From assembly GCA_052426225.1 (NCBI GenBank), contig JBNJNM010000003.1, positions 1 through 15,185 of the forward strand: a stretch of DNA of 15,185 nucleotides, read 5' to 3'. Below the pieces are notes generated by a model. That model searched no databases and was not told the origin of the DNA. It worked only from the letters and a program-made list of their open reading frames with translations. Made by a program: the position numbers and the translations under genes. Positions 1 to 15,185 of this stretch are shown piece after piece (positions within the stretch are counted from its first letter, which is position 1; every line of letters starts with the position of its first letter). The DNA comes from Zancudomyces culisetae HAW-14-8 (Eukaryota; Fungi; Kickxellomycota).

Positions 1-325
1 GCAGCAGAAAACTAGTTTATTTCATCGTAGATGGTATGTATATACTAGAAAAACAGACTAGTCTGTTATATATATGTTATTTGATATTCTTTACTACCAG
101 GCTTATAGTCATTAGTAAACTTGTTCTAAAAAAATTCTTTTATAATACCAAAATATATATCTTTTGTTTGTGGTACGTTTTAGTATTTAATTATTTTTTT
201 AAATTAACTTTGGTAATGCTATCTAACCATACTCAAGCACACGTCCATCATATGCAAAAATCTACAAACCAAAACAATTAGTTTTAAACAATTATTTTAA
301 ACCAGTACAAACGAGGGTTAAAGTT

Positions 326-675
326 TTATTTGTTGACGGCTTTACTAATTGATATGGATTTAGTTGAAAGGGGGCATATCTTGAGATCATCTGGGAAGTG
401 CCAAATCCCTTTCTTAAAAAATATTTTGCAGGATATACATCCTTACAGCTTCTTTGTGTACATAGCACCAATACTTCCTGTGCATCCGTAGGATTAAGAA
501 ACTGTGCTGAATGCCTGGGTTAATGTTTTAACATCGATGCTTTACCATTTAGAATTCATCTACTGCCACGTCTGAAAAACGATGTTATTAAAACATATTG
601 CGTGAAAGATTTATGTAGCATTTACTGGATATATGGCAAATGCCGTAGATAGGAGTGCTAGTTTTAGCTTACCAT
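326..675 (-). pseudogene. Probable pseudogene of a small secreted Cys-containing protein, paralogous to 3135-3605
   Basis: Manual minus-strand translation across several frameshifts and three TAA stops gives M(V)KLKLALLSTAFAIYPVNA|T*IFHAICFNNIVFSDVAVDEF*MVKHRC*NINP..HSAQFLNPTDAQEVLVLCTQRSCK.GCISCKIFFKKGIWHFPDDLKICPLSTKSISISKAVNK*. The AAAA-ATG context, signal-peptide-like N-terminus, RC-x~23-C-x4-C spacing and G-[IV]-W match the 156-aa protein. Confidence 0.5.
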
Positions 676-734
676 TTTTGATACTTGGTTTTAAATAGTA
701 CTATAAGCGGCAGATAAATTAGTGCTGTATGCAA

Positions 735-782
735 ATGACTATGATTATGATTATGATTATGATTATGATTGTGATTATGACA
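735..782. repeat. Hexanucleotide microsatellite (ATGATT)n, ~8 units
   Basis: ATGACT, ATGATT x5 (741-770), GTGATT, ATGACA read directly. Confidence 0.95.
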
Positions 783-2242
783 TTTACAATACTTAAATAT
801 ACAACGAATTTTTTTATTATTTTGCAATTATTAAATGTTGTGGACTATTTACACCCTCCCTCACTCTCATTTTCCTTCTAAACGTTCTCATATCGACCTC
901 AACCTAATGGCCTTCTAATATTTTTATCAGATTTTTATAATGATTCTAATTTTAGAAATGTAAGAAGGCTCAACAACCAAGAACATCATGTTGAAACATG
1001 ATATACTAGAATTTGTTGTGAAGTCCAAACGATTAAGGTTAGACAGTGAATTAACTTTAATATTTCTATTTATTATTTGGGATCTGATAGTTCAAATATG
1101 CAGTTTGGTTATATTTGGTTCTTGGATATTTATTTTAGATAGCTAATGACAATAATATAAATGACCGAGCTTTTTTCCTTATGGATAGATGGGAGAAATC
1201 TAGACGTTTACGAGAAAGTAATAATTTTACCAATAAAGGCTAACCTTGGCAAAAATTTATAGCAATTGCGACATATTTTAGAAAGTTACGTATTATACTG
1301 CTTCTAATTTTAACTTTGACAGTATTTATGTAGTTTTAAAGACACTTTATATTTAGTGGCTTTGCTGGAATAAGTACTATAATTACCAAGGTGGTTGAGT
1401 ATATTTATACCTTATTATGATTTTAATTTTATACAGCTAGTAGGTTAATTGCGCCTTGAGAATATTAGCTATTAAAAAATATGTATCAACAACATAAAGA
1501 ATTACATAATACTTTCTAAAAATAGTAATGTCATTAAAAGACTATCACTATCAACTGCTGTGCGAAGACAACAAGGTAATGAGTACTAAACTATTATAAT
1601 ACATAGGTTAAGGAAATAGTTAGTTGGTAGCTTTTTTGCGGGGAAGATCTAGTTTTATAGTAACACCTAAGTGCACAATAGTTATAATTATATCAGCACG
1701 TGGTCATTTACCACTCAAATACCTACAACTCTATTTATTTGATTTGGTAACTCCAGCTCATTAAAAATTATATTACATTTGCAGTAAATATTATGTAATA
1801 AGAATAAATAATAATAATTCTTCAAGAAATATGAGCTTATAAAAAGCGAGAAATTTGCGCTTGCGATAAAAATTTCTAAATCATCTTGTAATATTCGCAA
1901 TAAAGACAGAGTTAGTACTATTCGCAATTTATCAGGTGCATTAGAAATCTGTAAAACTGAAAATGTCTCGACCCCGCAAATACTCAAAAAATTTCACCCT
2001 TTACTTCCTTTTTTCCTGACGAGAGATTAATGTTGATCATTTTAGATTGGCGAATAATTACAAATCTGTTCAAACCTAAAATTGACATTGACTAGACCAT
2101 TACAAATAAAAGTATCATGTATCTAACAATAAAAGGGAGCATTGTAAAATAAGAGTAGCAGCTCCGAGTTGTGAACCTTTGGGAAGTGAAGCTTCACTAT
2201 TTGATTTCATAATAGCACCTCGCTATAAATAGTTTGAGTAAT

Positions 2243-2354
2243 AATAGACTCATGTTCTAAATCAGAGTACAATAGACTCATGTTCTAAATCAGAGTACAA
2301 TAGACTCATGTTCTAAATCAGAGTACAATAGATTCATGTTCTATATCAGAGTAT
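2243..2354. repeat. 28-bp minisatellite, 4 head-to-tail copies
   Basis: AATAGACTCATGTTCTAAATCAGAGTAC is identical at 2243, 2271 and 2299. The fourth copy at 2327 has 3 substitutions. There are no spacers. Confidence 0.95.
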
Positions 2355-3032
2355 TATAGCTATCACACAGTGCAGAATATCTTTACGTTTATGATACTCT
2401 TAGCTTACCTAATAATTGAGGAATTCGATTCAACTTGTTATCAAGTTATTTTAGACCGAAAGGTTTGTGTAAAACGCTCACCCAAAAATAGAAAAAGAGC
2501 AGAATTGAGTATCATGGATGCCGAAGTAATAGCTTTAGGGGTCAATTTCACATGTTTCTTTTTAGATATTAATTCTGGACTATTTTAGCAATATGTTTAG
2601 TTGAGCAAAATAAAACAGTGATATTTCTATGTAAGCATCTAGATAAAGTGATTACTCACCCAATACCCATTAACAACCAGACAAATGGTTATTTATGAAA
2701 ACAGAGAACAGTTAAGATTGGTTTGCAATTGATGACTTTATTTATTTTTAAAGATCTATATATAGATATCAGCCAAATACATATACCTATTTGTAGAAAT
2801 ATAATTAAAACTCGCATTACCAATTTAGACTGTACCTAGATTCATTATGTTGGATACGACAACAAAAAAGAGTAATGCAAATGGCATTTAATTAATAATA
2901 GGGAGTACTTCACATATAGTTGTAGCTAGAATAGTCGGCATAATAATAATAATACCAAAGCCATAGTCCTAATCAATACTAAACATATTTTATACTTTAT
3001 GGATAGGGAAATATCCGATTGTCTCTGAAAAG

Positions 3033-3040
3033 TATAAAAG
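3033..3040 (+). promoter_or_regulatory. Putative TATA box of the 156-aa secreted protein gene
   Basis: TATAAAAG about 100 nt upstream of ATG 3135. The AT-rich background lowers specificity. Confidence 0.45.
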
Positions 3041-3134
3041 GCAATACTTTTTCGATATTAAAAAAAACTATATCGCATTCAATAATAATTTAACATTTCG
3101 TATTAGCATTGAAAAAGAAATACAAAAACCGAAA

Positions 3135-3605
3135 ATGATCAAGTCAACAACACTCAGCATTCTCAGCATTCTCAGCATTTTAAGCATCCTTGTATCTAGC
3201 TCAGCCTTACCACAAAGTGCACAAAACCAAACTTTGCAAACTGTGGATGAAAACAGAGATCTAGAACTGACTACAAACTCACCTGCATCCAGAAATGATG
3301 ATATGATAGCTCAGCTGTTTCGTGTCGGTTCCGGCCTTAGTAATCCACTCGCTGTCGGCCGCGCCCCTAGTCAACCACTAGGTACTTTCAATATCAAATC
3401 AAATAGGTGCTACGCATCACCGGAGTTTGTAGCTGTAAAAATGGACGGCAGAAATATCAACAAAGGCGCATTCTTACTCTGTAGAGATGCAAATTGTGGA
3501 GGTACCTGCTATGTCCATGATATGAGACTGGGGAATTCGATTAATGGGGTATGGTATGCTCTCGGTCGTCGTTCTGCGGTATCTTATATTTGGACTACCT
3601 CATAA
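3135..3605 (+). CDS. Small secreted Cys-containing protein (156 aa); signal peptide, polar propeptide-like segment and a 4-Cys beta-rich domain, possibly beta/gamma-crystallin-like
   Basis: AAAA-ATG context, hydrophobic N-terminus ending SSA|LP, GC above the flanks, and motif RCY-x22-C-x4-CGGTCY...GVW...SYIW. The fold assignment is inference only. Confidence 0.85.
   Translation: MIKSTTLSILSILSILSILVSSSALPQSAQNQTLQTVDENRDLELTTNSPASRNDDMIAQLFRVGSGLSNPLAVGRAPSQPLGTFNIKSNRCYASPEFVAVKMDGRNINKGAFLLCRDANCGGTCYVHDMRLGNSINGVWYALGRRSAVSYIWTTS
3153..3188 (+). repeat. 9-bp coding tandem repeat (CTCAGCATT)x3 plus one variant, encoding (LSI)x4 in the signal peptide
   Basis: CTCAGCATT at 3153, 3162 and 3171, then TTAAGCATC at 3180. 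Confidence 0.9.
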
Positions 3606-4612
3606 GATTGAATACCAATGTGATACTTAAAATGGTATGATAGCTACTCCCAATTTGATCAGTTTCGTTACTATTTTGGTTCTATTATATTAGTGATTAT
3701 AATTAAAATTTAAAATGTTTGAAGTAAAGGTTTTTAGCAAGAGGTGTTCAGAGTTTATATTTACATCTTTTATGCTATTTTTGAAATAAACAAACTTAAA
3801 AAAGAAAAACTCATTCATTTAAAATTTATCAAGAAAATATATTACTTTCAGTAGTACAATAATAAAATAATTTAATTGTTTATTTAATAAGCAGTTAAAT
3901 AGATAAATATAAATAGGAGCAGCGTTTAAACTTGCTTGTGCAAAATCTGGTAGTAATTTAATATATTTGAAGGTAGAATTAAAAATGTTTATTGATTAGT
4001 ACAATAACGAGAGTTTCGTATTACTCGAGTTTAGTGTGTGTCGCGTGTTCTAGGTTATAAGACCTAAATGATACATTTTCTAGGGAAACTATAAAATTAC
4101 AGAAAGTTATTAATATGTGAATAATGAATTTGATGTTATGTATGATGATAACAATCAAAAACATGAGCTATATTTCCGATCACAAAATTAATCAAGAAAT
4201 CAAATCAAAAATCAACTAGAAAAATTTCAAAATGCAATAACAGAAAAAGAATTTATTAGTAATAGTATACATCAAATACAATAAGAGTAGATATACGAGT
4301 ATGGGAAATGAGACAGAACATGAGGATAATAACAAGGCTAAATAAAAGTAATAACAGATATAGTAGACATTAATAGGAATAGTTTTATATTAGTTTTAAC
4401 TATAGCAATTAACATATTTAAAAGAAAAAGAGACCTCATTAGGAGTATCTTTAGCTCTTTTAGTAGTTTTAAAGTATACAGTATACAAGAAAATTAATAA
4501 GATTGAACAAGTAATTTTTTTGAAACAGATTGATTATAAGTCAAGTTATAAGAATAGTGCTAAGGCTAATATTTAAAAAAGTAAGAGATTATTTTAAAAA
4601 ACTAAAATTTCA

Positions 4613-4966
4613 ATGTCAGGTCTGATTAAGCAACTCCGTTCGGCAATCATCCAACAGTTTCAAGATAATGGCCGCTACTCTTCCAAAGGTGCCAGATCAG
4701 GTGTCTCGTCCATGGGTGTAGAACCCGAACCGCCACGTGACCCATTTAAAGATCTTGAAGAAGTAATCAACCAGGTGTTTCTATTCGTCAGAAACCCGAA
4801 AAACAAACGAGATCTGCCCGGTTGCTTCTGCCACATCTTTGGCAAAAAAATTGTTGTATACTTTGTAAATTGCATCGAAAAACTATTTGCTAATTATGGT
4901 TTATTTTGTAAAAGAAATGGAAGCTTTTTTAATACTTGGGAATCACCTTCAAATCATTTGGTTTAA
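4613..4966 (+). other. GC-elevated ORF fragment, possibly a decayed retroelement ORF1/gag N-terminus
   Basis: The first ~80 codons (4613-4845) are clearly more GC-rich than the flanks, with C-ending codons and a PEPP motif. After the A7 run near 4845 the sequence becomes AT-rich and less protein-like. No domain is recognised with confidence. Confidence 0.3.
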
Positions 4967-6869
4967 TCAAAAATATATCGGTAAAAAGTTGCTCTCAATA
5001 TAGAATCGATTGCTAAAACGTTTAGCAAGTTCATCTATGAATAACTAGCAATGTATTGTACCAACACTTTTTTTTTTGTCCAAGGTTTGACTTAGCACCC
5101 AATTCAAATCATTTGGTAAACTGTTTTATGAAAATTAAAAGAGTAGTGAAGAATTCTATATGAAATAGAAAGAAATCAAAAATTGGGATAGAAAAAATTG
5201 ATACCCCAGGAGTTTTGTGTGGTTGAGGACTGATTCATATTATTCACAGTTGAATTTCCCATATTTTAAATGGGGATTTGGTTTAATTTTAAGTACAACA
5301 GAAATCTTCAACTACTTACAGTTTTTGTGGTAAGAATTGCGTAAACCAATGATAAATTACTAAAATTCAAACAGATACATTAGCAGTGAAATTGAGCTCT
5401 CAGACGCTTTTATTTAATAAACTATTTACGCATAAGTGTCAAAAATGGATTATTTATGGTCAAAGTTAGTAGTTTTGTATGATTATATTTAAAAAAAGCG
5501 ACATCGCGAGCTTTAAAAATAGGGAGTTTATTGGTATAAATAGCCTAAGAGTTAATTTTGTCTAAAATTTGATCAATATATATCACTACAAATAAATATA
5601 TATTATTGAAGCAATTGGATTTAAAAAAGTATTCAACTTCGGTAATTGTAAAAAAATTATATAATGATGGTATATCGAAATATTTAATTGAAACTGGAAA
5701 TAAATCAAAGAAATTTTATTTAAGCAAAATCGAAAACAACACCTTTTGGAGCTGAAAATGATGAAAATTTAGGTAGAGTATCTAAGTGAGGGCTAATTAT
5801 CATTGACAACAAAGAATGGGTTACTCAGCTAAAATGGCACAGCAATATCATGAGGTGCATCTTGTAGAACAAAATCAGAGACAGGTTCAACTAAACTATA
5901 AGAAATGAGAGTACAAATAAACAGAATAGAAATAATCAACTGAAAACAGCTTCGAAACTTAAACATACAACCTAAACTAACAGATTCACTGAGGCATACT
6001 AGCAGGTAAGGATATAAAAGTACCAAGTGATAACAATGGAAAAATATATATGTGACAATCAGTATAGTTATTGTAAGAAGGGCGGTGAAAATTATAAAAA
6101 TATGATATATAACTGTAGTCTTATGATAGGATATCAGAAACTTATAAAATACTTTATTGAAGATAAAGTATGAAAACAAACTGAAAATAAAAGTGAAAAC
6201 AATGTAAAAATACAGGATATATATGATATGCTAACTAAGTGTAAAGGGGAAATATCCGGGAAAAAAGTTATACACGTACCAGAAGTATGGAACATTCATC
6301 ATGCTCAAGCTGAAAGCCTGCTGTCGAACACCAACCTAAATGAGACCAAGCTGTATCACCGCCTCTGTGGAACGCTTTGAGAGAAGATTGGTCAAGGCTA
6401 CAAGTATCAAACACTTCAATGGATTTAATCGCAAATGGTTAATCGTCAAAATTTTGTGGTTTTTTATTGAGCCAGGAGGAGAAAATCAAATCGAGAAATA
6501 GTTTATATCGTTGTTTCATTTCTCTCTAACATTTTTTGGGTGTATTAGATATATTTTTTTAGACACTTTGAAGAATTTGGTTTTATGGGTAGATGTAAAT
6601 ATTACAAACCCCTTTGAAAATCTTTTTTTATTTATGGTGTAAATAAATCCTTTCAAATACAAAATAAATATCCCCTACAATTACGATATTTCTTTTGTGA
6701 TAATATTAATAATAGCTACAATATTTCCGTTACTGTCCAAGATTATTAAATATGTCAAACCAGAATATTAATTAGTGAGTATGCTTTAATTATTATATTT
6801 AATTAAATAGGCCTAAAAATATTAAAAATTCCAAACTAGTAGATACACAATCTTTTTGTCGGTGGGTTT

Positions 6870-7766
6870 CTAAAATCTGGTGTAAGTCAACTCAGAAATG
6901 TTTCGGTGTAATATACTGGATAGCCATTCAAAATACCAACTCACATGTGTAAAAAACATTAAATCATTGTTGTTCCCACACCTTATTGCTTTTGGATCAT
7001 TGGGGTTTTCCATAGTGAAACTAATGATTCCAACAAGAGCGTTTTCTTCATTGTTTTTATATATTAGTGGTCCTCCTGAATCTCCTTTGCATACACCTTG
7101 GCTATTTCTAACCACACTGCAAATCTGGTCGTGGTTATTCCCACTCCAATCCGGATTTAAATTTTTACAGGAGGCATCTGAGGATATGTATACTTCCACC
7201 TGCATAAACGAAGTGGGGAAAGACGTGTTGACTTCAGCGATTGTTCTTCCCCACCCTGCCGCAAATAACTTCATATTATCAATTATTGTGCCGGAATAAA
7301 TTTTTGCATACTTTAACGTTGGAATCTTAATGGGTGTTGTTAGCTCAATTATTCCTATATCATGCTTAAGGCTTATCGGATCATAATCTGGGTGGATATA
7401 TACACTACTGGCTCTAATTAAACTTCTAGACAAATAAAATACTTCAATTCCGCCCGGACTAACCTGAATTTTATCCGTGTCGGCTGGTATTGTGGTCCAA
7501 CCATTTGTAAGGCAATGTGCTGCAGTAATTACTATTCTATCAGAGATCAACGACCCTCCACATACACTATTGTATCCGCCATTACTATTAAGAATCCCAG
7601 TGTGCACTATATATGGAAAGTCTTCGATGTTTGCGATTGTGCCATTTACCATTCTTGTATGAAGAACTTTATTATTAGTTTTATGTTTGATACATAAAAC
7701 AAATCCTAATAATAGGAATATTATTACCTGTGTATTTTTATATAAATATTTTTGTATTAAATGCAT
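6870..7766 (-). CDS. Secreted S1 (trypsin/chymotrypsin-family) serine protease zymogen, 298 aa, intronless
   Basis: Signal-like VIIFLLLGFVLC, activation site R|MVNG, CGGSLI, and catalytic motifs TAAHC (His), HDIGII (Asp) and GDSGGP (Ser). The C-terminus FTHVSWYFEWL is typical of the family. Confidence 0.96.
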   Translation of the reverse strand: MHLIQKYLYKNTQVIIFLLLGFVLCIKHKTNNKVLHTRMVNGTIANIEDFPYIVHTGILNSNGGYNSVCGGSLISDRIVITAAHCLTNGWTTIPADTDKIQVSPGGIEVFYLSRSLIRASSVYIHPDYDPISLKHDIGIIELTTPIKIPTLKYAKIYSGTIIDNMKLFAAGWGRTIAEVNTSFPTSFMQVEVYISSDASCKNLNPDWSGNNHDQICSVVRNSQGVCKGDSGGPLIYKNNEENALVGIISFTMENPNDPKAIRCGNNNDLMFFTHVSWYFEWLSSILHRNISELTYTRF

Positions 7767-7879
7767 GTTAATTGATCACTTTACATTAGAATCAAAAAAA
7801 AAATACTATCGTTACTTGAAATAGTTAAGATAATAGCTACTGGTATTTTCTAAGCTCGAAATTTCTCAGGTATCTTGTC

Positions 7880-7886
7880 TTTTATA
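7880..7886 (-). promoter_or_regulatory. Putative TATA box of the protease gene
   Basis: TATAAAA on the minus strand about 115 nt upstream of the ATG at 7766. Confidence 0.35.
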
Positions 7887-9085
7887 TGTGAACTGAGTAA
7901 AAATAGAAAATTTCAAGCTGGACCCAGAAAATGTAAATAGAAGCTTTGAGTAAGAAGGATTAGGAAATGCAAATAAGAAAATTTTTAAATCACAGATGGT
8001 TTGTATCAAATAGATAGGCTAATATCCATAATTTTGAATTCAGTATAAATTTATGAATTATGCATATAAACATATATTTTATACGCGTCGGAAAAAAAAA
8101 CAGGTATAATGTAACCTCTAATCTGTACTTGCTTCTGACTGATATAAAAATATATGGGTAGATCGTATTTTTTAGATAACTAAAGTTGGTTGTATAAGCG
8201 AATAAGAATTAAGAGCATTTTCGGATACAAACCTATCTTGAATAAAGTGTACAGGTTCAACCTGAGGGCAATCACAATATACTTGATTTATTTTTAACCG
8301 AGAATGATTTGATTCATATAAGATAGGTTAGGTTAAATAGAGTAAATCGGGTATGTATAGAATTTACATATTAGGTCCTAACCTCACAGTTCGAATGCTA
8401 ATAAATAGTAATTAAAGTCATTTTATGATTCAATGATCATAAAATGTTACTAAATGGCATTTGTTACATTTATTTCATGTTTTTCGATTGTGTTAAATTT
8501 GATAGTAGGCGAAAGAGTATAATGTGTTTTTTTTAGTTTACTTTTAAAGTAAATTGGGTAGAATGTGTATTTTCAATTTTTATTGAATAAAAATACACAT
8601 ATTACAATAAAGATTTAGGTTGACCAAAATCGTATTTAACCGTTGAAGTTTGAAGTATCTGAGATGGAATTAATAGTTACTTTAAAATATACAAATTTTT
8701 GATTGAAAGCACCTATACATTCTAAAAGTATCAAAATCAGTCTGATATGTAAAAGTATATAAGATGGTATAAACATATAAACCATTACAAGTTAGCGATA
8801 TTCTACAACAAATACTTATATAAATCAGGTAAGTTTTAACAAATGATGTATAGATATCATTATTATAATGGTTGAAAATATGAGCTGAGGTTATACTAGA
8901 TTTGATGTTCTGGTATTCTTTTTATCCATAATTGTGGGCAAAACTATTTTCTAATATTTTTCTTTTAATTTGCTATTGGCATGGTTTATTGATAAGAAAG
9001 TGTTATTAGTCAACTAAAACCTTTAAATGTGTTAACTATAAGAAACCATAAAAAGCTAATACAAACACCATTTTTATTAATAACC

Positions 9086-9316
9086 CTAAAAATTAACATT
9101 CTCAGTGGTAGGCCCACAGTATGCGTGCCAGTTAAATGGGTGTTTACATATAAAACCCTCACGACAATTAATATTTGTCCATTCCATGTTAACGCACCGT
9201 GCAACTAGCTGGACACCTACACAATACGAAGTCCCAGAAATACAATATGCTCTAACTAAGATGCTGTGAGCAGTAAGCGAAACCGCCAATATCGATATAA
9301 ATGATGAATATTTCAT
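9086..9316 (-). CDS. Small secreted 6-Cys peptide (76 aa), CBM19-like putative chitin-binding module
   Basis: The start at 9316 (AAAA-ATG) gives the signal peptide MKYSSFISILAVSLTAHSILVRA. The mature part C-xx-G-xxx-C-x8-C-x-N-xx-W-x4-C-xx-G-xx-C-x9-C resembles the fungal CBM19 cysteine pattern. The family call is from memory of the motif, not from a search. Confidence 0.75.
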   Translation of the reverse strand: MKYSSFISILAVSLTAHSILVRAYCISGTSYCVGVQLVARCVNMEWTNINCREGFICKHPFNWHAYCGPTTENVNF

Positions 9317-9858
9317 TTTTAAATAGTAAAAGTACTCATACATGAGACTTATATATCTAAGAATCCGTTTATTCATTCATATTTACTCTTCTTATTAGTA
9401 GATTCTTGCAATTTTTATATCTGTGAGCAAATTCATATGTAGATGGGTCAGTATGTCCTATCATGAATTTTTTTACCCATTGCAAACCGATTCTTTAATT
9501 CGTATTACTTGTTTGATTAAAATTTAATATATATACCAGTTAAATTACCATTTATTAATCACTAGTATGGATCATCCTTTTATATATGGCTTGTAAGTTA
9601 AACAATAAAATGTTACACAAATCAATTGCGTGGTATACACGCTAATTTGGAGAAATCAATTAGATAAGGTGTTAACATCACATAGTAGATTTTTAACTTT
9701 TTTAATTTTTTTTATTGACGTACAATTGCTCATTAGGACCATATAAGGCCTGCATGAATTCGAATCGAATAAAATCATTTTTTTAGCTCAAAATCAGCCT
9801 TTATCATGCAAAAATTGAGCTTGTAATTGGAAAATAGCTCATCATGGCTTCTGTTCTT

Positions 9859-10161
9859 TTATTATGCTTCATTGGCCAGATACAATTATGTGTTACCAAA
9901 TCTTTATTTAATTTCGAAATCTTTCCTAGATACTAAATACTTTAACCCCAAAAAATTTTTCAAATGTTCCAAAGTGTTCGAAATTTCGTAATCTGAAATT
10001 GAAAACTCAAGAATATTCTAGAGAGTTCGAATTCAGTACTAAAATTTCTTTGAAAATGTAGGGGTTAAAAGTATGAAAAAATTTTCTTAAAACAAAAACA
10101 AAATGAAAATAAAAGTATATAAACCGTTTGTTTTTCCAGTTTTCTTGAGTTCCTTACCATC
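9859..10161 (+). repeat. Left ITR (shared core 9875-10161 plus 16-nt left-specific extension 9859-9874)
   Basis: 9875-10161 is the reverse complement of 14026-14314 except for one substitution (G9974 vs T14213) and a 2-bp TG/CA indel near the outer end. Confidence 0.97.
10116..10123 (+). promoter_or_regulatory. TATA box in the left ITR (sense promoter candidate)
   Basis: TATATAAA 110 nt upstream of the gag ATG, followed by a pyrimidine-rich stretch. Confidence 0.5.
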
Positions 10162-10225
10162 TTTTCTTTCGCTAGGTACACAACCAGCATTTATATACAT
10201 ATAATAAATATAAATAAAGTCAATC

Positions 10226-11062
10226 ATGAATAATGCAAACATTTCGCAAGAAATGCTTCAGGAAATCCTCAACAGACTTACTGTTCTGGAGGAATCAGGT
10301 TCACAGCAACAGGCAGCATCAGTCCCAGAGTCAGTGGATATGGATCCGCCAGTTTCTCATATCACAGAAAGGCCACAGCCCGCCGACATGGAGCTTTACA
10401 AAGAGCTCCAAGAAGCTCTTCCAACCGTTACGGAAGACTTCTTCAAGTCCCCTCTGTCCGACATCAATCGGAAGAAGTTTTTTGCCGCCGTCCCCAGAAA
10501 CTCCGCCATGGACTATGACCCTCCCGCGGTCAATGTCAAGTTGTCCAGCTCTGCCAAACGCACCGACGCCGCCATGTATGATGCGCAGTACAGGTTATCG
10601 GCAATCACCAGGCCGATTGACTTCTTTGTGCATGAGTGCATTCAGGGTGGCAGCCAAGTGCCAGTCTCCAAGGTTATTGAGTTTGCCAACTCAATCAGGA
10701 TTCTCTTGGCTGATGCGGCAACGCACCTCAGCCAGTGCAGAATCAATCAGGCATACAGAGATGCGGGTGTTGAAACCGACACGCCGCAACTCTATCCAGA
10801 AACCAAGAAGTCCCTTGTCGACACAAGCCAGATTGTCGAAGCAAAGGCCAGCCAGCAAGCGGCCCAGAGGGCACTCAAGAGCTACCAGCCACGCAGGCCC
10901 AGATACACCGGTCAGAGAGCATTTCCAAGCCTCATGGGAATGCAGCAAGGCCAGCAACCACAGATCCAAGAACCACAGCAGGTCCAGGAGCAGAGGCAGC
11001 CCCGTTTCAATGCTCCTAAGAATAATTTTCGGGGTGGCAGCAGCATCAGACCCCGAAAGTAG
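10226..11062 (+). CDS. gag: DIRS ORF1, Gag-like protein, 278 aa
   Basis: First ORF after the left ITR, with an N-terminal coiled-coil-like LQEILNRLTVLE, a helical core and a basic/Gln-rich C-terminal tail. The position is typical of DIRS ORF1. Confidence 0.9.
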   Translation: MNNANISQEMLQEILNRLTVLEESGSQQQAASVPESVDMDPPVSHITERPQPADMELYKELQEALPTVTEDFFKSPLSDINRKKFFAAVPRNSAMDYDPPAVNVKLSSSAKRTDAAMYDAQYRLSAITRPIDFFVHECIQGGSQVPVSKVIEFANSIRILLADAATHLSQCRINQAYRDAGVETDTPQLYPETKKSLVDTSQIVEAKASQQAAQRALKSYQPRRPRYTGQRAFPSLMGMQQGQQPQIQEPQQVQEQRQPRFNAPKNNFRGGSSIRPRK

Positions 11063-13904
11063 GGGGCAGACTGAAGCTCTTCCAGGAGGCATGGAAGAAG
11101 CTTACCGATCACCAGTGGGTACTCCAGGTGATCAAGGAAGGGTTTCGTATCCCCTTCAATGCGCATCCTCCCACGGTCAAGCAGCCAAAGCCGTGCGTGA
11201 AGGACTTAAAGAAACTTCCGGAAAAGGTCGTCGAGCAGGAGATTACAAGTCTCCTCTCCAAAAAAGCTATAGAGGAAGTTTCAGCAGCGCAGCCAGGATT
11301 CTTCTCAAGGACATTCACCGTCCCAAAGAAGAATGGAGGAACACGGATGGTCCTCAACCTGAGACCTTTAAACCAGTACATCCCCGAGCAGCATTTCAAG
11401 ATGGAATCACTCAACACCATCTCACGAATGTTGCGAAAGGGCGACTGGATGACAAGCATCGATCTCAGCGATGCTTTCTTGCACGTGCTCATCAACAAGG
11501 CGTCAAGAAAATATCTCAGGTTCACGTGGGGCCATCGCATCTACCAGTACAGGGTACTGCCATTTGGTCTGTCCTTAAGCCCGCTAGTATTCACCAAAAT
11601 ACTAAAGCCAGTTCTCAAGTGGGCCAGAGCTCGAGGGATCCGAATCTCGAGCTACTTGGACGATTTGCTGGTCTTGGGATCAACCAAAAGCGAGTGTACC
11701 AAGTACACTGCGATGGTTGCAAACAAGCTAGCCAAGCTAGGGTTCATTATAAACAACGAGAAGTCGTCAATGAACCCCAAGCAGTCAATCAGCCATTTGG
11801 GTATGGACATCAACACCCGCCAAATGAGCTTCAGGATTCCCAAGCAGAAACTCAGGGATCTCACGCGAGAGGCATCCAAACTGATCAGGAATGGGAAGAC
11901 GACGCTGAGATGCTTAGCATCTTTCATTGGCAAGACACAGGCAGTGAACATCGCTCTCCGTCCAGGCAGACTCATGAGCAGGAGGCTTTTGGAGCTCAAG
12001 AATGCCACCCTGCGGACCACGCGGGATTGGAGCACAGAAGTATCTTTGGATCAGCCAGCTCTAGACAACCTGATCTGGTGGAGAGATCATCTGAAGGAAT
12101 GGAACGGCCTGAGCTTCCTCCCAGAGATTCCGGAAGTGGAAGTCTACACAGACGCGAGCGACTTCCATTGGGGGATAGTTATTGGTCAGAGCCAGTACTC
12201 AGGAATATGGACCAAAGCACAGTCCAAGCTCCCGATCAACGCCAAGGAGCTACTAGCCATATACAAGGCTATCAAGATGCCCCAGGTAAAGGGCAGGAGT
12301 GTGGTTGTATACTGCGACAACAACACCTCCATCAGCTATGTCAAGAAACAGGGAGGGACCAGATCACCCAACCTGCTAGACATATCGGAACTGATGTGGA
12401 AACACTGCATCAGCAACGGGACCAGGGTACAGATCCAGTACGTACCATCCATTGTGAATCCGGCAGACGCCCCATCCCGGCTTACTTTGCAGACCGAATG
12501 GTCGATATCGGAAAGAGTGTTTCAAAGGATTCAAAAATACTTTGGTCCTCACGATATCGACATGTTTGCGAGCAGCACCAATCACAAACTGAACACATTT
12601 GTGAGTTGGAAATACTGCCCCCAAGCAGTCAGGATCAACGCCTTCAACCACAGTTGGACAGTGTGGAAGAATCCATACATGTGTCCACCGTGGAATCTGA
12701 TCCAGCGTACCATCCAGAAGATCCGTCACGAGAGAATCACGGCGACTCTGATCACGCCGTTCTGGAGATCAGCCCCGTGGTATCCGGACCTGAAGAGCCT
12801 GTCAATTGCACCGCCAATCAAGATTCATCCGTCAGCAGTTATCCCAGACCCGAGAAGCGGAAAAGCAGCGACAATGCGCAACAAGACATGGTCACTTACG
12901 GCTTGGCGGTTAAGCGCGCAAGGTATCAGGAAGCAGGATTAGATGACCAGGTCATCAATTTGATGCTCGACAACACTCGAGTTAAGACGAGGCAGAAGAA
13001 ATATCTGAGCCCGAAGACCAAGTTCCTACAGTGGCTTTCTACATCTTCAATCTCCATAGAAAACGTAACAGTCGTTGACGTTATCAACTATCTGGAGCAG
13101 CAGCGGAAGGCGCTAAACTGGAGACTCGGAACAGTCAAGAACTACAAGTCCGCCATTCTTGACATAACCAGTGATTGGGCTTCTTTCAGTGACGATCCAC
13201 TAATGAAAGAGTATCTCAAACAACTATCTTCATCAAACGTCAGATCCTTTGACAATCCGCTTTACGACATCGGTCCAATCATTGACCACATCAGGAAACT
13301 TGGGCCTAACTCCAGAATGTCAAAGTATGACTTGACAGCAAAACTATGCTGGCTCATAGCCATCTGTGGCTTTCTCAGGCCAAGCGACATTGAGAGGATT
13401 GACGACAGCAAGACGTCAGTGACAAGAGAATACATCAAGTTTATTATTGTTGGACCAAAGGAGAAACGCAATGGAACTCCAATTGAAAAAGTTTCTATAA
13501 TCCATGCACACTCTGACAAAAAATTATGTCCGGTTGAAACTTATCAGGTTTACAAAAAGCGGATTGCGGTTACACCTTGCGTAAAACCACATCCTTTGCT
13601 CGACGGAAACTCAATATCCTATCTCATCAGGAGTCTCAAGGACCACAGTACTAACATTGGAGCACAGCGTATCAGCAAGCACATTAACAAACTTATGTCG
13701 CTTATACCATTACCGCCAAACGCTAAAGTACCAAAAGCAAGAGCACTTGGATCAACTCGTGCTACTTCATCAGGTGCAACATATGATGATGTTATTACCC
13801 AAGGATTTTGGGCAAGCAGAGGAATATTTGATACATACTATCAGTTATCACGTAGAACAAGAGAAAATTTGACTCTACACGTATTAAACTCTGAAGCAAC
13901 ATAA
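10233..13904 (+). CDS. Tyrosine recombinase ORF; recognisable YR part from Met 12888 (338 aa) with an ~885-aa overprinted N-terminal extension
   Basis: FLRPSD (Arg at 13377), KEKR, LCPV, PKAR (13731-13742), GFW and FDTYY (13836-13841) occur in YR order. There is no stop between 10233 and 13902. Confidence in the YR domain is high and confidence in the start at 10233 is moderate. Confidence 0.88.
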   Translation: MQTFRKKCFRKSSTDLLFWRNQVHSNRQHQSQSQWIWIRQFLISQKGHSPPTWSFTKSSKKLFQPLRKTSSSPLCPTSIGRSFLPPSPETPPWTMTLPRSMSSCPALPNAPTPPCMMRSTGYRQSPGRLTSLCMSAFRVAAKCQSPRLLSLPTQSGFSWLMRQRTSASAESIRHTEMRVLKPTRRNSIQKPRSPLSTQARLSKQRPASKRPRGHSRATSHAGPDTPVREHFQASWECSKASNHRSKNHSRSRSRGSPVSMLLRIIFGVAAASDPESRGQTEALPGGMEEAYRSPVGTPGDQGRVSYPLQCASSHGQAAKAVREGLKETSGKGRRAGDYKSPLQKSYRGSFSSAARILLKDIHRPKEEWRNTDGPQPETFKPVHPRAAFQDGITQHHLTNVAKGRLDDKHRSQRCFLARAHQQGVKKISQVHVGPSHLPVQGTAIWSVLKPASIHQNTKASSQVGQSSRDPNLELLGRFAGLGINQKRVYQVHCDGCKQASQARVHYKQREVVNEPQAVNQPFGYGHQHPPNELQDSQAETQGSHARGIQTDQEWEDDAEMLSIFHWQDTGSEHRSPSRQTHEQEAFGAQECHPADHAGLEHRSIFGSASSRQPDLVERSSEGMERPELPPRDSGSGSLHRRERLPLGDSYWSEPVLRNMDQSTVQAPDQRQGATSHIQGYQDAPGKGQECGCILRQQHLHQLCQETGRDQITQPARHIGTDVETLHQQRDQGTDPVRTIHCESGRRPIPAYFADRMVDIGKSVSKDSKILWSSRYRHVCEQHQSQTEHICELEILPPSSQDQRLQPQLDSVEESIHVSTVESDPAYHPEDPSRENHGDSDHAVLEISPVVSGPEEPVNCTANQDSSVSSYPRPEKRKSSDNAQQDMVTYGLAVKRARYQEAGLDDQVINLMLDNTRVKTRQKKYLSPKTKFLQWLSTSSISIENVTVVDVINYLEQQRKALNWRLGTVKNYKSAILDITSDWASFSDDPLMKEYLKQLSSSNVRSFDNPLYDIGPIIDHIRKLGPNSRMSKYDLTAKLCWLIAICGFLRPSDIERIDDSKTSVTREYIKFIIVGPKEKRNGTPIEKVSIIHAHSDKKLCPVETYQVYKKRIAVTPCVKPHPLLDGNSISYLIRSLKDHSTNIGAQRISKHINKLMSLIPLPPNAKVPKARALGSTRATSSGATYDDVITQGFWASRGIFDTYYQLSRRTRENLTLHVLNSEAT
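11026..12942 (+). CDS. pol: DIRS pol: reverse transcriptase, RNase H and Dam-like N6-adenine methyltransferase domain
   Basis: The frame is open from 11026 (after TAA 11023-11025) and includes the DIRS-typical VGGRL..F...W from 11059. RT motifs are FTVPKKNGG.R, IDLSDAF, LPFGL and YLDD (11653-11664). RNase H motifs are TDAS, INAKEL, CDN and NPADAPSR. MT motifs are DIDMFAS and CPPW (12682-12693). The true start is unknown. Confidence 0.95.
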   Translation, partial: FSGWQQHQTPKVGGRLKLFQEAWKKLTDHQWVLQVIKEGFRIPFNAHPPTVKQPKPCVKDLKKLPEKVVEQEITSLLSKKAIEEVSAAQPGFFSRTFTVPKKNGGTRMVLNLRPLNQYIPEQHFKMESLNTISRMLRKGDWMTSIDLSDAFLHVLINKASRKYLRFTWGHRIYQYRVLPFGLSLSPLVFTKILKPVLKWARARGIRISSYLDDLLVLGSTKSECTKYTAMVANKLAKLGFIINNEKSSMNPKQSISHLGMDINTRQMSFRIPKQKLRDLTREASKLIRNGKTTLRCLASFIGKTQAVNIALRPGRLMSRRLLELKNATLRTTRDWSTEVSLDQPALDNLIWWRDHLKEWNGLSFLPEIPEVEVYTDASDFHWGIVIGQSQYSGIWTKAQSKLPINAKELLAIYKAIKMPQVKGRSVVVYCDNNTSISYVKKQGGTRSPNLLDISELMWKHCISNGTRVQIQYVPSIVNPADAPSRLTLQTEWSISERVFQRIQKYFGPHDIDMFASSTNHKLNTFVSWKYCPQAVRINAFNHSWTVWKNPYMCPPWNLIQRTIQKIRHERITATLITPFWRSAPWYPDLKSLSIAPPIKIHPSAVIPDPRSGKAATMRNKTWSLTAWRLSAQGIRKQD

Positions 13905-13993
13905 TTGTATCTGGCCAATGAAGCATAATAATATGTTTAGTTGAATATAATGAAAACTTATTATTATTATGCGAATGCCAGATACAATTATGT
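13899..13993 (+). repeat. Internal complementary region (ICR), the template for the circle junction
   Basis: 13899-13931 is the exact reverse complement of 9859-9891 (33 nt) and 13928-13993 is the exact reverse complement of 14298-14363 (66 nt). The halves overlap by ATAA. The YR stop codon (13902-13904) lies inside the ICR. Confidence 0.97.
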
Positions 13994-14010
13994 CCCACCC
14001 AGTCCCGCCC
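13994..14010 (-). other. Canonical G-quadruplex-forming motif GGGCGGGACTGGGTGGG
   Basis: The plus strand reads CCCACCCAGTCCCGCCC: four C3 runs with loops of 1, 3 and 1 nt, in otherwise very AT-rich sequence. Confidence 0.75.
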
Positions 14011-14025
14011 TAACCTAGCTCAACC

Positions 14026-14363
14026 GATGGTAAGGAACTCAAGAAAACTGGAAAAACAAACGGTTTATATACTTTTATTTTCATTTTGTTTTTGTTTTAA
14101 GAAAATTTTTTCATACTTTTAACCCCTACATTTTCAAAGAAATTTTAGTACTGAATTCGAACTCTCTAGAATATTCTTGAGTTTTCAATTTCAGATTACG
14201 AAATTTCGAACATTTTGGAACATTTGAAAAATTTTTTGGGGTTAAAGTATTTAGTATCTAGGAAAGATTTCGAAATTAAATAAAGATTTGGTAACACACA
14301 TAATTGTATCTGGCATTCGCATAATAATAATAAGTTTTCATTATATTCAACTAAACATATTAT
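14026..14363 (-). repeat. Right ITR (shared core 14026-14314 plus 49-nt right-specific extension 14315-14363)
   Basis: Reverse complement of the left ITR core. The extension matches the right half of the ICR. Confidence 0.97.
14064..14071 (-). promoter_or_regulatory. TATA box in the right ITR (antisense promoter candidate)
   Basis: Mirror copy of 10116-10123, pointing into the ICR/YR region. Confidence 0.4.
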
Positions 14364-15185
14364 AAGTCACTATTGTCTTATCCGTTCTTTATCGTGAATT
14401 AAAATACAGCGATATATAGTAAAGATATATTCAACTAAATATAAAAATTACCTTTAAAATTTTGACTCTGGAAAATATTCACACTGCCTAAAAATATATT
14501 ATGCGCAGAATTTTTTAAATTACATTAATATGTAGTTTATTCTTTAAAAAAACAAATAAGAATATCTATTGATTTTAAGTGAGAATTGGATTTTACGGGA
14601 TAAAGTGGTAAAGAGTTATGAGAATACAATGTTATACTATTATTTTTTTTAAAGATATATATTTTTGATTTTAGACGAGAATAGTCTTTGGAGTTTATAT
14701 GAACACAAAAGAGGTGATATCATTGATATTCTTATTCACAATTATAAAGATATTGGGAGTAGATAAATTATGAATTTTTAACTATTCATTATCAAAATCT
14801 GACTAAATAGTATACCGTTTTTGCTGTTAGGCTGATTAAAGATTCTCAAAAATAAATTTAACTAGCAATAAGTGGGCTATAATCGCTTAGTCGTTTTTAA
14901 GTTTAAGAAAATGTGAAAATTATATCTATTGGCTTCAGAAATGGGTCCCAGTAGGAAACTCAGTATGAAACACATCCCAGAAACATTAAGGACAGGAAGA
15001 GGAAAGGTAGGGATATAGAAATGTGAGGATTTTTTTTTAGAAAGACTCATTAGTAGTATCAAACACTGGTTGCTTACCCATAAAGGGGAGTGATGCCCAA
15101 TTACTATTTCTGGCTGAGTTGAACACACACAAAACCTTTGAATGAAGTCTATTGCGCGAGTATTATCATTCTAGATAGAATTAGA

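Follow-up and report, generated by a model that had tools for sequence, protein, structure and literature searches.

How does a retrotransposon make the product of its last gene when the frame of that gene runs beneath both of the genes before it? This question is raised by a DIRS1-like element on the forward strand of a 15,185-nt stretch of DNA from the fungus Zancudomyces culisetae HAW-14-8 (Kickxellomycota; assembly GCA_052426225.1, contig JBNJNM010000003.1, positions 1 to 15,185; hereafter the window, to which all coordinates refer). In this element, the frame of the tyrosine recombinase (YR) is open from an AUG just inside gag, through gag and pol, to the recombinase domain at its 3' end. 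Comparison with related elements supports the view that selection holds this frame open from the second AUG, and has done so in 12 or more separate lineages (Harpellales, Mucorales and metagenomes), and we consider it probable that Gag and a long YR protein are made from competing, closely spaced AUGs, and Gag-Pol by a -1 frameshift.

Twin AUGs and an open recombinase frame

The gag ATG at 10226 is followed 7 nt later by the YR-frame ATG at 10233, and both of these twin AUGs (10226-10235) have an A at -3. The gag-like open reading frame (ORF) spans 10226-11062 (278 aa), and the pol frame, with reverse transcriptase (RT), RNase H and Dam-like methyltransferase domains, spans 11026-12942 (638 codons). 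From the second ATG, the YR frame meets its next stop only at 13902-13904, giving an ORF of 1223 aa (10233-13904) in which a leader of ~885 aa across gag and pol precedes the recombinase. All three frames are open at 11026-11059. A sequence-only reading of the locus had described this layout, and our recount agrees with it, also in the details of composition that it had pointed to: within gag, A never comes after any of the 14 internal NTG codons and the one NTA codon precedes a T, the YR-only part contains 21 NTA codons, and GC falls from 35/60 within the overlap to 22/60 past it.

How surprising is such an open frame? For pol, overwhelmingly so. At pol junctions at risk of a YR-frame stop, the needed T occurs in 0 of 170 cases, compared with 83 of 434 elsewhere, and permutation of pol produces a mean of 21 YR-frame stops and never fewer than 8, against none observed. 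Synonymous-codon shuffling of gag alone lends the sequence-only reading modest support in this element: the P for an open frame by chance is 0.026 under permutation of synonymous codons and 0.003 under permutation of all codons, and the frame was open in 0 of 20,000 trials that drew the gag codons anew according to pol usage, YR-only usage or a uniform usage. On these sequences, the gag part of the open frame becomes convincing only through its relatives.

The in-frame TGA at 10227, just ahead of the second AUG, had been put forward as part of the arrangement. It consists merely of the gag ATG plus an A, and the open stretch of the YR frame extends upstream of the gag AUG in family D of the same genome and in Mucor hiemalis; we reject the TGA as a signal because it is not conserved.

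Conservation in related fungal elements

Diverged relatives keep both the tandem AUGs and the open frame in 15 of the 16 gag genes tested. In these 15, the +1 frame after the second AUG contains no stop, where 2.7-7.4 would be expected per gene (P 0.0007-0.027 each), and the +2 frame contains 6-35. The first +1 AUG lies 7-34 nt past the gag AUG in all 15, with a chance of 0.03-0.27 per family. Eight of them have a spacing of 7-10 nt and the remainder one of 16-34 nt; because the spacing varies (7, 10, 16, 19, 22, 34), the AUG pair is not a single inherited word. With one gene taken from each of 12 lineages, the product of the P values is ~1e-31 for stops and ~1e-13 for the position of the AUG. 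The metagenome families were located by pol motifs and hence blind to the layout of gag and YR, and Circinella minor via its long YR-frame protein. The first plausible ATG was taken as the gag start, which is uncertain for loci L047, L053 and L061, and broken copies from Zychaea, Rhizopus delemar, Furculomyces and Smittium were kept out of the 16-gene test.

The range of elements sharing the plan is wide. In the same genome, family C (pol 78% and gag 46% identical) has its second AUG at +10 and a YR frame of 1237 aa, and family D (pol 55% identical) also has its second AUG at +10, followed by 1258 codons. C. minor (second AUG at +7, ATGAATAATG as in the Zancudomyces element, 1275 codons), C. 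umbellata (+16), M. hiemalis (+7) and Cunninghamella echinulata (+22, at a locus with a GC content of 0.28) keep the plan too, as do several metagenome families. In quick IQ-TREE and FastTree phylogenies of pol, all elements with YR at +1 and pol at -1 relative to gag fall into one clade with 99% Shimodaira-Hasegawa (SH)-like support.

But what about relatives in which the frame is closed? The sequence-only reading had named YR-frame stops within the gag of related intact elements as something that would speak against its view, and such stops do occur in Absidia, L116 and Smittium. Absidia repens, which adjoins the open-frame Cunninghamella element in the pol tree, has seven such stops, in three copies whose gag sequences show no more than one base of difference; the Logan element L116 has four and lacks an early AUG, and the broken Smittium copies have many. 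From this distribution, we regard the through-gag frame as the common state of the clade and not an obligatory one, probably lost or replaced more than once.

More distant elements are arranged differently. At 13 metagenome DIRS1-like loci (L055-L085; pol 30-38% identical), pol is likewise +1 to the YR frame, which is open beneath pol; unlike in the Zancudomyces element, where YR is +1 to gag, gag and YR share one frame and are separated by a single stop. All nine elements of this same-frame type that were tested have stops (8-22) that close the +1 frame of gag. The splitting stop is TGA in nine loci, with C next in eight, and TAG in four, with G next in three, contexts that suggest programmed readthrough. 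In a further DIRS-like locus, L054, the YR frame overlaps just the last 100 nt of pol, so that the long overlap is missing.

A candidate slippery site where pol opens

How do ribosomes reach pol? Its first AUG in frame, at 11347, lies inside the RT, where the conserved VGGRL block has begun 107 codons earlier, and most relatives lack an early pol AUG too. Because pol has no AUG ahead of the RT, we propose that a -1 slip gives Gag-Pol. In every element, pol opens 25-300 nt ahead of the gag stop, and within this pol-open end of gag strict slippery heptamers in the gag frame occur in 13 of 600 codons, compared with 13 of 4882 elsewhere (P 8e-7). A strict heptamer or T_TTT is present there in all 19 elements scanned. 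The word T_AAT_TTT_C marks the exact point at which pol becomes open in the Zancudomyces element (11023-11030 in the window) and in family C, and is our candidate frameshift site; TTTTC reads as Phe in all three frames. The enrichment of slippery words supports a -1 frameshift to Gag-Pol.

A model for expression from one RNA

We infer that the second AUG is used, that frameshifting takes place and that three products result. One capped RNA would suffice: scanning ribosomes would divide between the two close AUGs, the first leading to Gag and the second, in the +1 frame, to the recombinase behind its long and probably unstructured leader, while a fraction of the ribosomes on gag would slip -1 at the U-rich site 33 nt ahead of the gag stop to make Gag-Pol. 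The leader would then mainly be an uninterrupted path to the YR domain, with selection acting on stops and on the position of the AUG and little on the amino acids in between. Leaky scanning on one mRNA, as the sequence-only reading had it, survives in part: initiation at two AUGs of one mRNA fits the conserved layout, but with an A at -3 for both, competition fits better than leakage past a weak context. In yeast, close out-of-frame AUGs do compete, and they have been purged from ordinary genes (PMC9743702); turnip yellow mosaic virus (TYMV), as well as influenza B virus, makes use of close AUG pairs (PMC6294492).

Several observations weigh against this model. The products of P values given above ignore shared ancestry, although third positions are near saturation and the gag genes mostly share no more than 22-47% identity. 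In three or four related lineages the frame is closed in gag, so YR must be made otherwise there. In family C, pol carries an AUG at its beginning. The heptamer of the Zancudomyces element, U_AAU_UUU, is non-canonical and permits the slip of a single tRNA-Phe, and folding of eight stretches without pseudoknots revealed no shared stimulatory structure (z -1.9 to +0.9). Finally, no sequencing run was found to contain the element as RNA, the one partial match (412 nt) being probably DNA.

Alternative explanations and the role of the leader

The same slippery site could serve the recombinase itself. YR would then be mainly a Gag-YR fusion, made by ribosomes that slip +1 on the UUU_C close to the end of gag, the site whose -1 slip gives pol, and the second AUG would be secondary or a backup. 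The motif is conspicuous: T_TTT_C is 20 times as frequent in the pol-open end of gag (12 of 600 codons) as elsewhere (5 of 4882), the Zancudomyces element and family C carry UUU_CGG, matching the UUU_CGN that is the +1 motif of amalgaviruses (PMC5052127), and every closed-frame lineage (Absidia, L116 and both Smittium) has UUU_C at the end of gag. Such a slip would also retain the Gag-YR fusion implied by the gag-stop-YR order of the 13 distant elements. It leaves unexplained, however, why the frame is free of stops upstream of the site, all the way back to a conserved AUG, and the C may have been fixed by pol, where it is part of Phe-Ser. Furthermore, five open-frame elements have G_GGA_AAC and no UUU_C, and must obtain YR by some means other than a +1 slip at that word. 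We consider this route unlikely as the main source of YR. The occurrence of UUU_C in closed-frame elements and of G_GGA_AAC in some open-frame ones is a lead based on small numbers. It would fit a broader scheme that we put forward only tentatively, in which one UUUUC switch leads by a -1 slip to Gag-Pol and, in part of the lineages, by a +1 slip to Gag-YR, the twin AUGs give Gag and a YR protein of ~1,200 aa, and lineages swap between the routes to YR.

A still less likely possibility is that the second AUG is used and the open frame mainly averts nonsense-mediated decay or titrates Gag, with YR translated from a start farther inside the frame, for instance Met 12888, of an RNA that is spliced or shorter. 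In yeast, out-of-frame AUGs near the start trigger such decay if a stop follows (PMC9743702), the leader shows no visible amino-acid constraint, and Met 12888 is common to families A and C. On the other hand, 900 codons are much harder to keep open than a second AUG is to lose, and family D and Circinella lack a Met at the position of 12888. A splice acceptor at the gag stop (GTAG before G) was considered as well and rejected: the word follows from Val-Gly in pol, and the AG is not a conserved acceptor, being absent from Mucor, Cunninghamella, Absidia and L053.

Does the leader itself carry a function? It could be a module, such as a basic region that tethers YR by binding RNA or the particle, or a separate overprinted protein freed by cleavage. 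The third of the leader that overlaps gag is indeed basic (47 K+R against 9 D+E), disorder-promoting residues are abundant in the leader (0.65 compared with 0.51), and disordered tethers require little conservation of sequence. However, the basic bias can arise from gag codons, and the identity of the leader between distant families (25-30%) tracks that of gag and pol. Suppressed synonymous variation in gag and pol, which the sequence-only reading had proposed to look for, is not seen: four-fold sites covered by the leader are as diverged between families A and C (gag 0.71, pol 0.58) as those of the YR-only part (0.60), although near saturation limits the power of this comparison. Among the family C copies, 19 shared variants are synonymous in pol and change the leader. 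Residues 1-400 have no confident fold in a single-sequence prediction, a weak test (mean predicted local distance difference test (pLDDT) score 42). With four-fold sites unprotected and no confident fold, the earlier idea of a sequence-specific tether is not borne out. A tethering role is possible, but the leader is probably a spacer that needs freedom from stops, and we judge a functional module or released protein to be improbable. Codon bias could also have left the frame open across gag as a side effect, NTA codons being few and third positions rich in GC, and the P of just 0.026 by synonymous permutation in the Zancudomyces element alone might allow this. Such an origin is hardly credible, being refuted by the repetition of the pattern in 15 of 16 gag genes with a third-position GC content (GC3) of 0.27-0.65 and a +2 frame full of stops.

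Comparison with known systems

We would like to place the model of competing AUGs and a -1 frameshift into the context of known systems. Retroviruses and some Ty3/gypsy elements express pol from gag by -1 frameshifting. The Zancudomyces element resembles such systems in a candidate slippery word within a short gag/pol overlap, and has the UUU_CG of the +1 motif of amalgaviruses (PMC5052127); it differs from the -1 systems in its non-canonical heptamer and in the absence of a shared stimulatory RNA structure among the stretches folded. Dicistronic RNAs with two near, out-of-frame AUGs and long overlapping frames are known as TYMV p69/p206, influenza B NB/NA and umbravirus p26/p27 (PMC6294492, PMC9743702). 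These belong to non-homologous RNA viruses in which translation has been tested; here the second frame spans two genes before its sole recognizable domain. The 7 nt between the AUGs of the Zancudomyces element falls within the ~15 nt taken as the limit for such close pairs. If the model is right, it would bring close-AUG dicistronic initiation to a retrotransposon.

In its overall structure, the element resembles the DIRS1-like superfamily of Mucoromycotina and Kickxellomycotina (PMC3266345, PMC3783388), with inverted terminal repeats (ITRs), an internal complementary region (ICR), both extensions, gag, an RT-RNase H-methyltransferase pol and a 3' YR overlapping pol. MciDIRS1 of Mucor circinelloides has a similar size and shares the DLSDAF and LCPV motifs. 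Long pol/YR overlaps are present in all five annotated fungal elements (PMC3266345, PMC3783388), confirming that this part of the arrangement was known; the same accounts describe the pol/YR overlap only, and no YR frame through gag, twin AUGs or frameshift site. We found no account of these three features in the literature covered; the older papers of Goodwin and Poulter and Repbase lay outside its scope, and a prior description is possible, the more so as an ORF finder applied to a Mucor element could have shown the long ORF. As far as can be read from the elements themselves, this is a real, conserved twist on DIRS1-like organization with a testable model for its expression.

How the overlapping genes of DIRS elements are translated has not been worked out in the accounts available. 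The clade supplies precise signals in the form of the second AUG, the stop-free path and the slippery site, and its open and closed variants are natural controls. Under the model, dual coding over ~2.7 kb would have been maintained across two fungal phyla. The layout also explains a recurring annotation error, in which gene callers fuse gag to YR via apparent false introns and miss pol: public gene models (L041-L044, L108-L115 and P0001-P0007) join gag to YR or skip pol via small apparent false introns.

Structure and copies of the element

We classify 9859-14363 (forward strand, ~4.5 kb, ends accurate within 2 nt from repeats and copy alignment) as an intact, young DIRS1-like retrotransposon, because it combines 273-nt ITRs and an ICR matching both ends with RT, RNase H and Dam-like domains. 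The left extension (9859-9891) pairs over 33 nt with the left half of the ICR, and the right extension (14298-14363) over 66 nt with the right half, both at 100%. The ITRs lie at 9889-10161 and 14026-14298 and are 100% identical, and the ICR (13899-13993) consists of the halves 13899-13931 and 13928-13993, which overlap at 13928-13931. Pfam matches in pol are RVT_1 (8.6e-28), RT_RNaseH (4e-7) and Dam (7.5e-6); the Pfam search found no protease or integrase in the element and no match for the gag-like ORF, which has homologues in Mucorales and Harpellales and is named from its position. The recombinase domain (12888-13904) has weak Pfam support (SAM_4 only) and no match among PDB sequences. We identify it because its motifs are conserved (RPSDIER at 13377, KEKR at 13458, ARALGS at 13737, GFW at 13803 and YYQLSR at 13836, with the residues R, K, R, W and Y invariant or nearly so in an alignment of relatives) and because its relatives carry the UniRef names Tyr recombinase or core-binding domain. 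The region is 99% identical to a protein of Z. culisetae, a fungus that lives in insect guts.

The genome contains eight full-length copies that are 98-100% identical end to end and have different flanks; all three frames are intact in four. Comparison of inserted copies shows that they start and stop at ATTA/TTAT words, beyond which the flanks are unrelated. Two loci on contig C8, L003 and L004, have identical flanks and represent a segmental duplicate or an assembly repeat, and families C and A each have a copy at L035 (G000:C15:786400-796399), the two standing tail to tail within 10 kb. In five further copies (L010-L014; element positions 1101-4504, 96-97% identical), the internal region is missing its initial 1.1 kb, a common AT-rich stretch that does not code stands in its place at the 5' end, and the pol and YR frames are mostly broken. 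They possibly form a gag-less non-autonomous subfamily; given the nature of this 5' stretch, we reject the idea that they are gag-swapped recombinants. In Smittium culicis, a protein fragment (P0013) is 89% identical to the Zancudomyces Gag, compared with 61-71% or less for other Smittium DIRS elements. This closeness points either to a recent horizontal move between Harpellales that share insect guts or to a contaminated assembly.

Elsewhere in the window, an ORF of 298 aa on the reverse strand (6870-7766) encodes a trypsin-like serine protease (Pfam Trypsin, 7.6e-32). Two small ORFs, one of 156 aa on the forward strand (3135-3605) and one of 96 aa on the reverse strand (9086-9376), each have a hydrophobic N terminus, several cysteines and no Pfam match, and possibly encode secreted proteins. 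Repeat analysis also detected a tandem array of about five copies of a 28-nt unit at 2215-2354.

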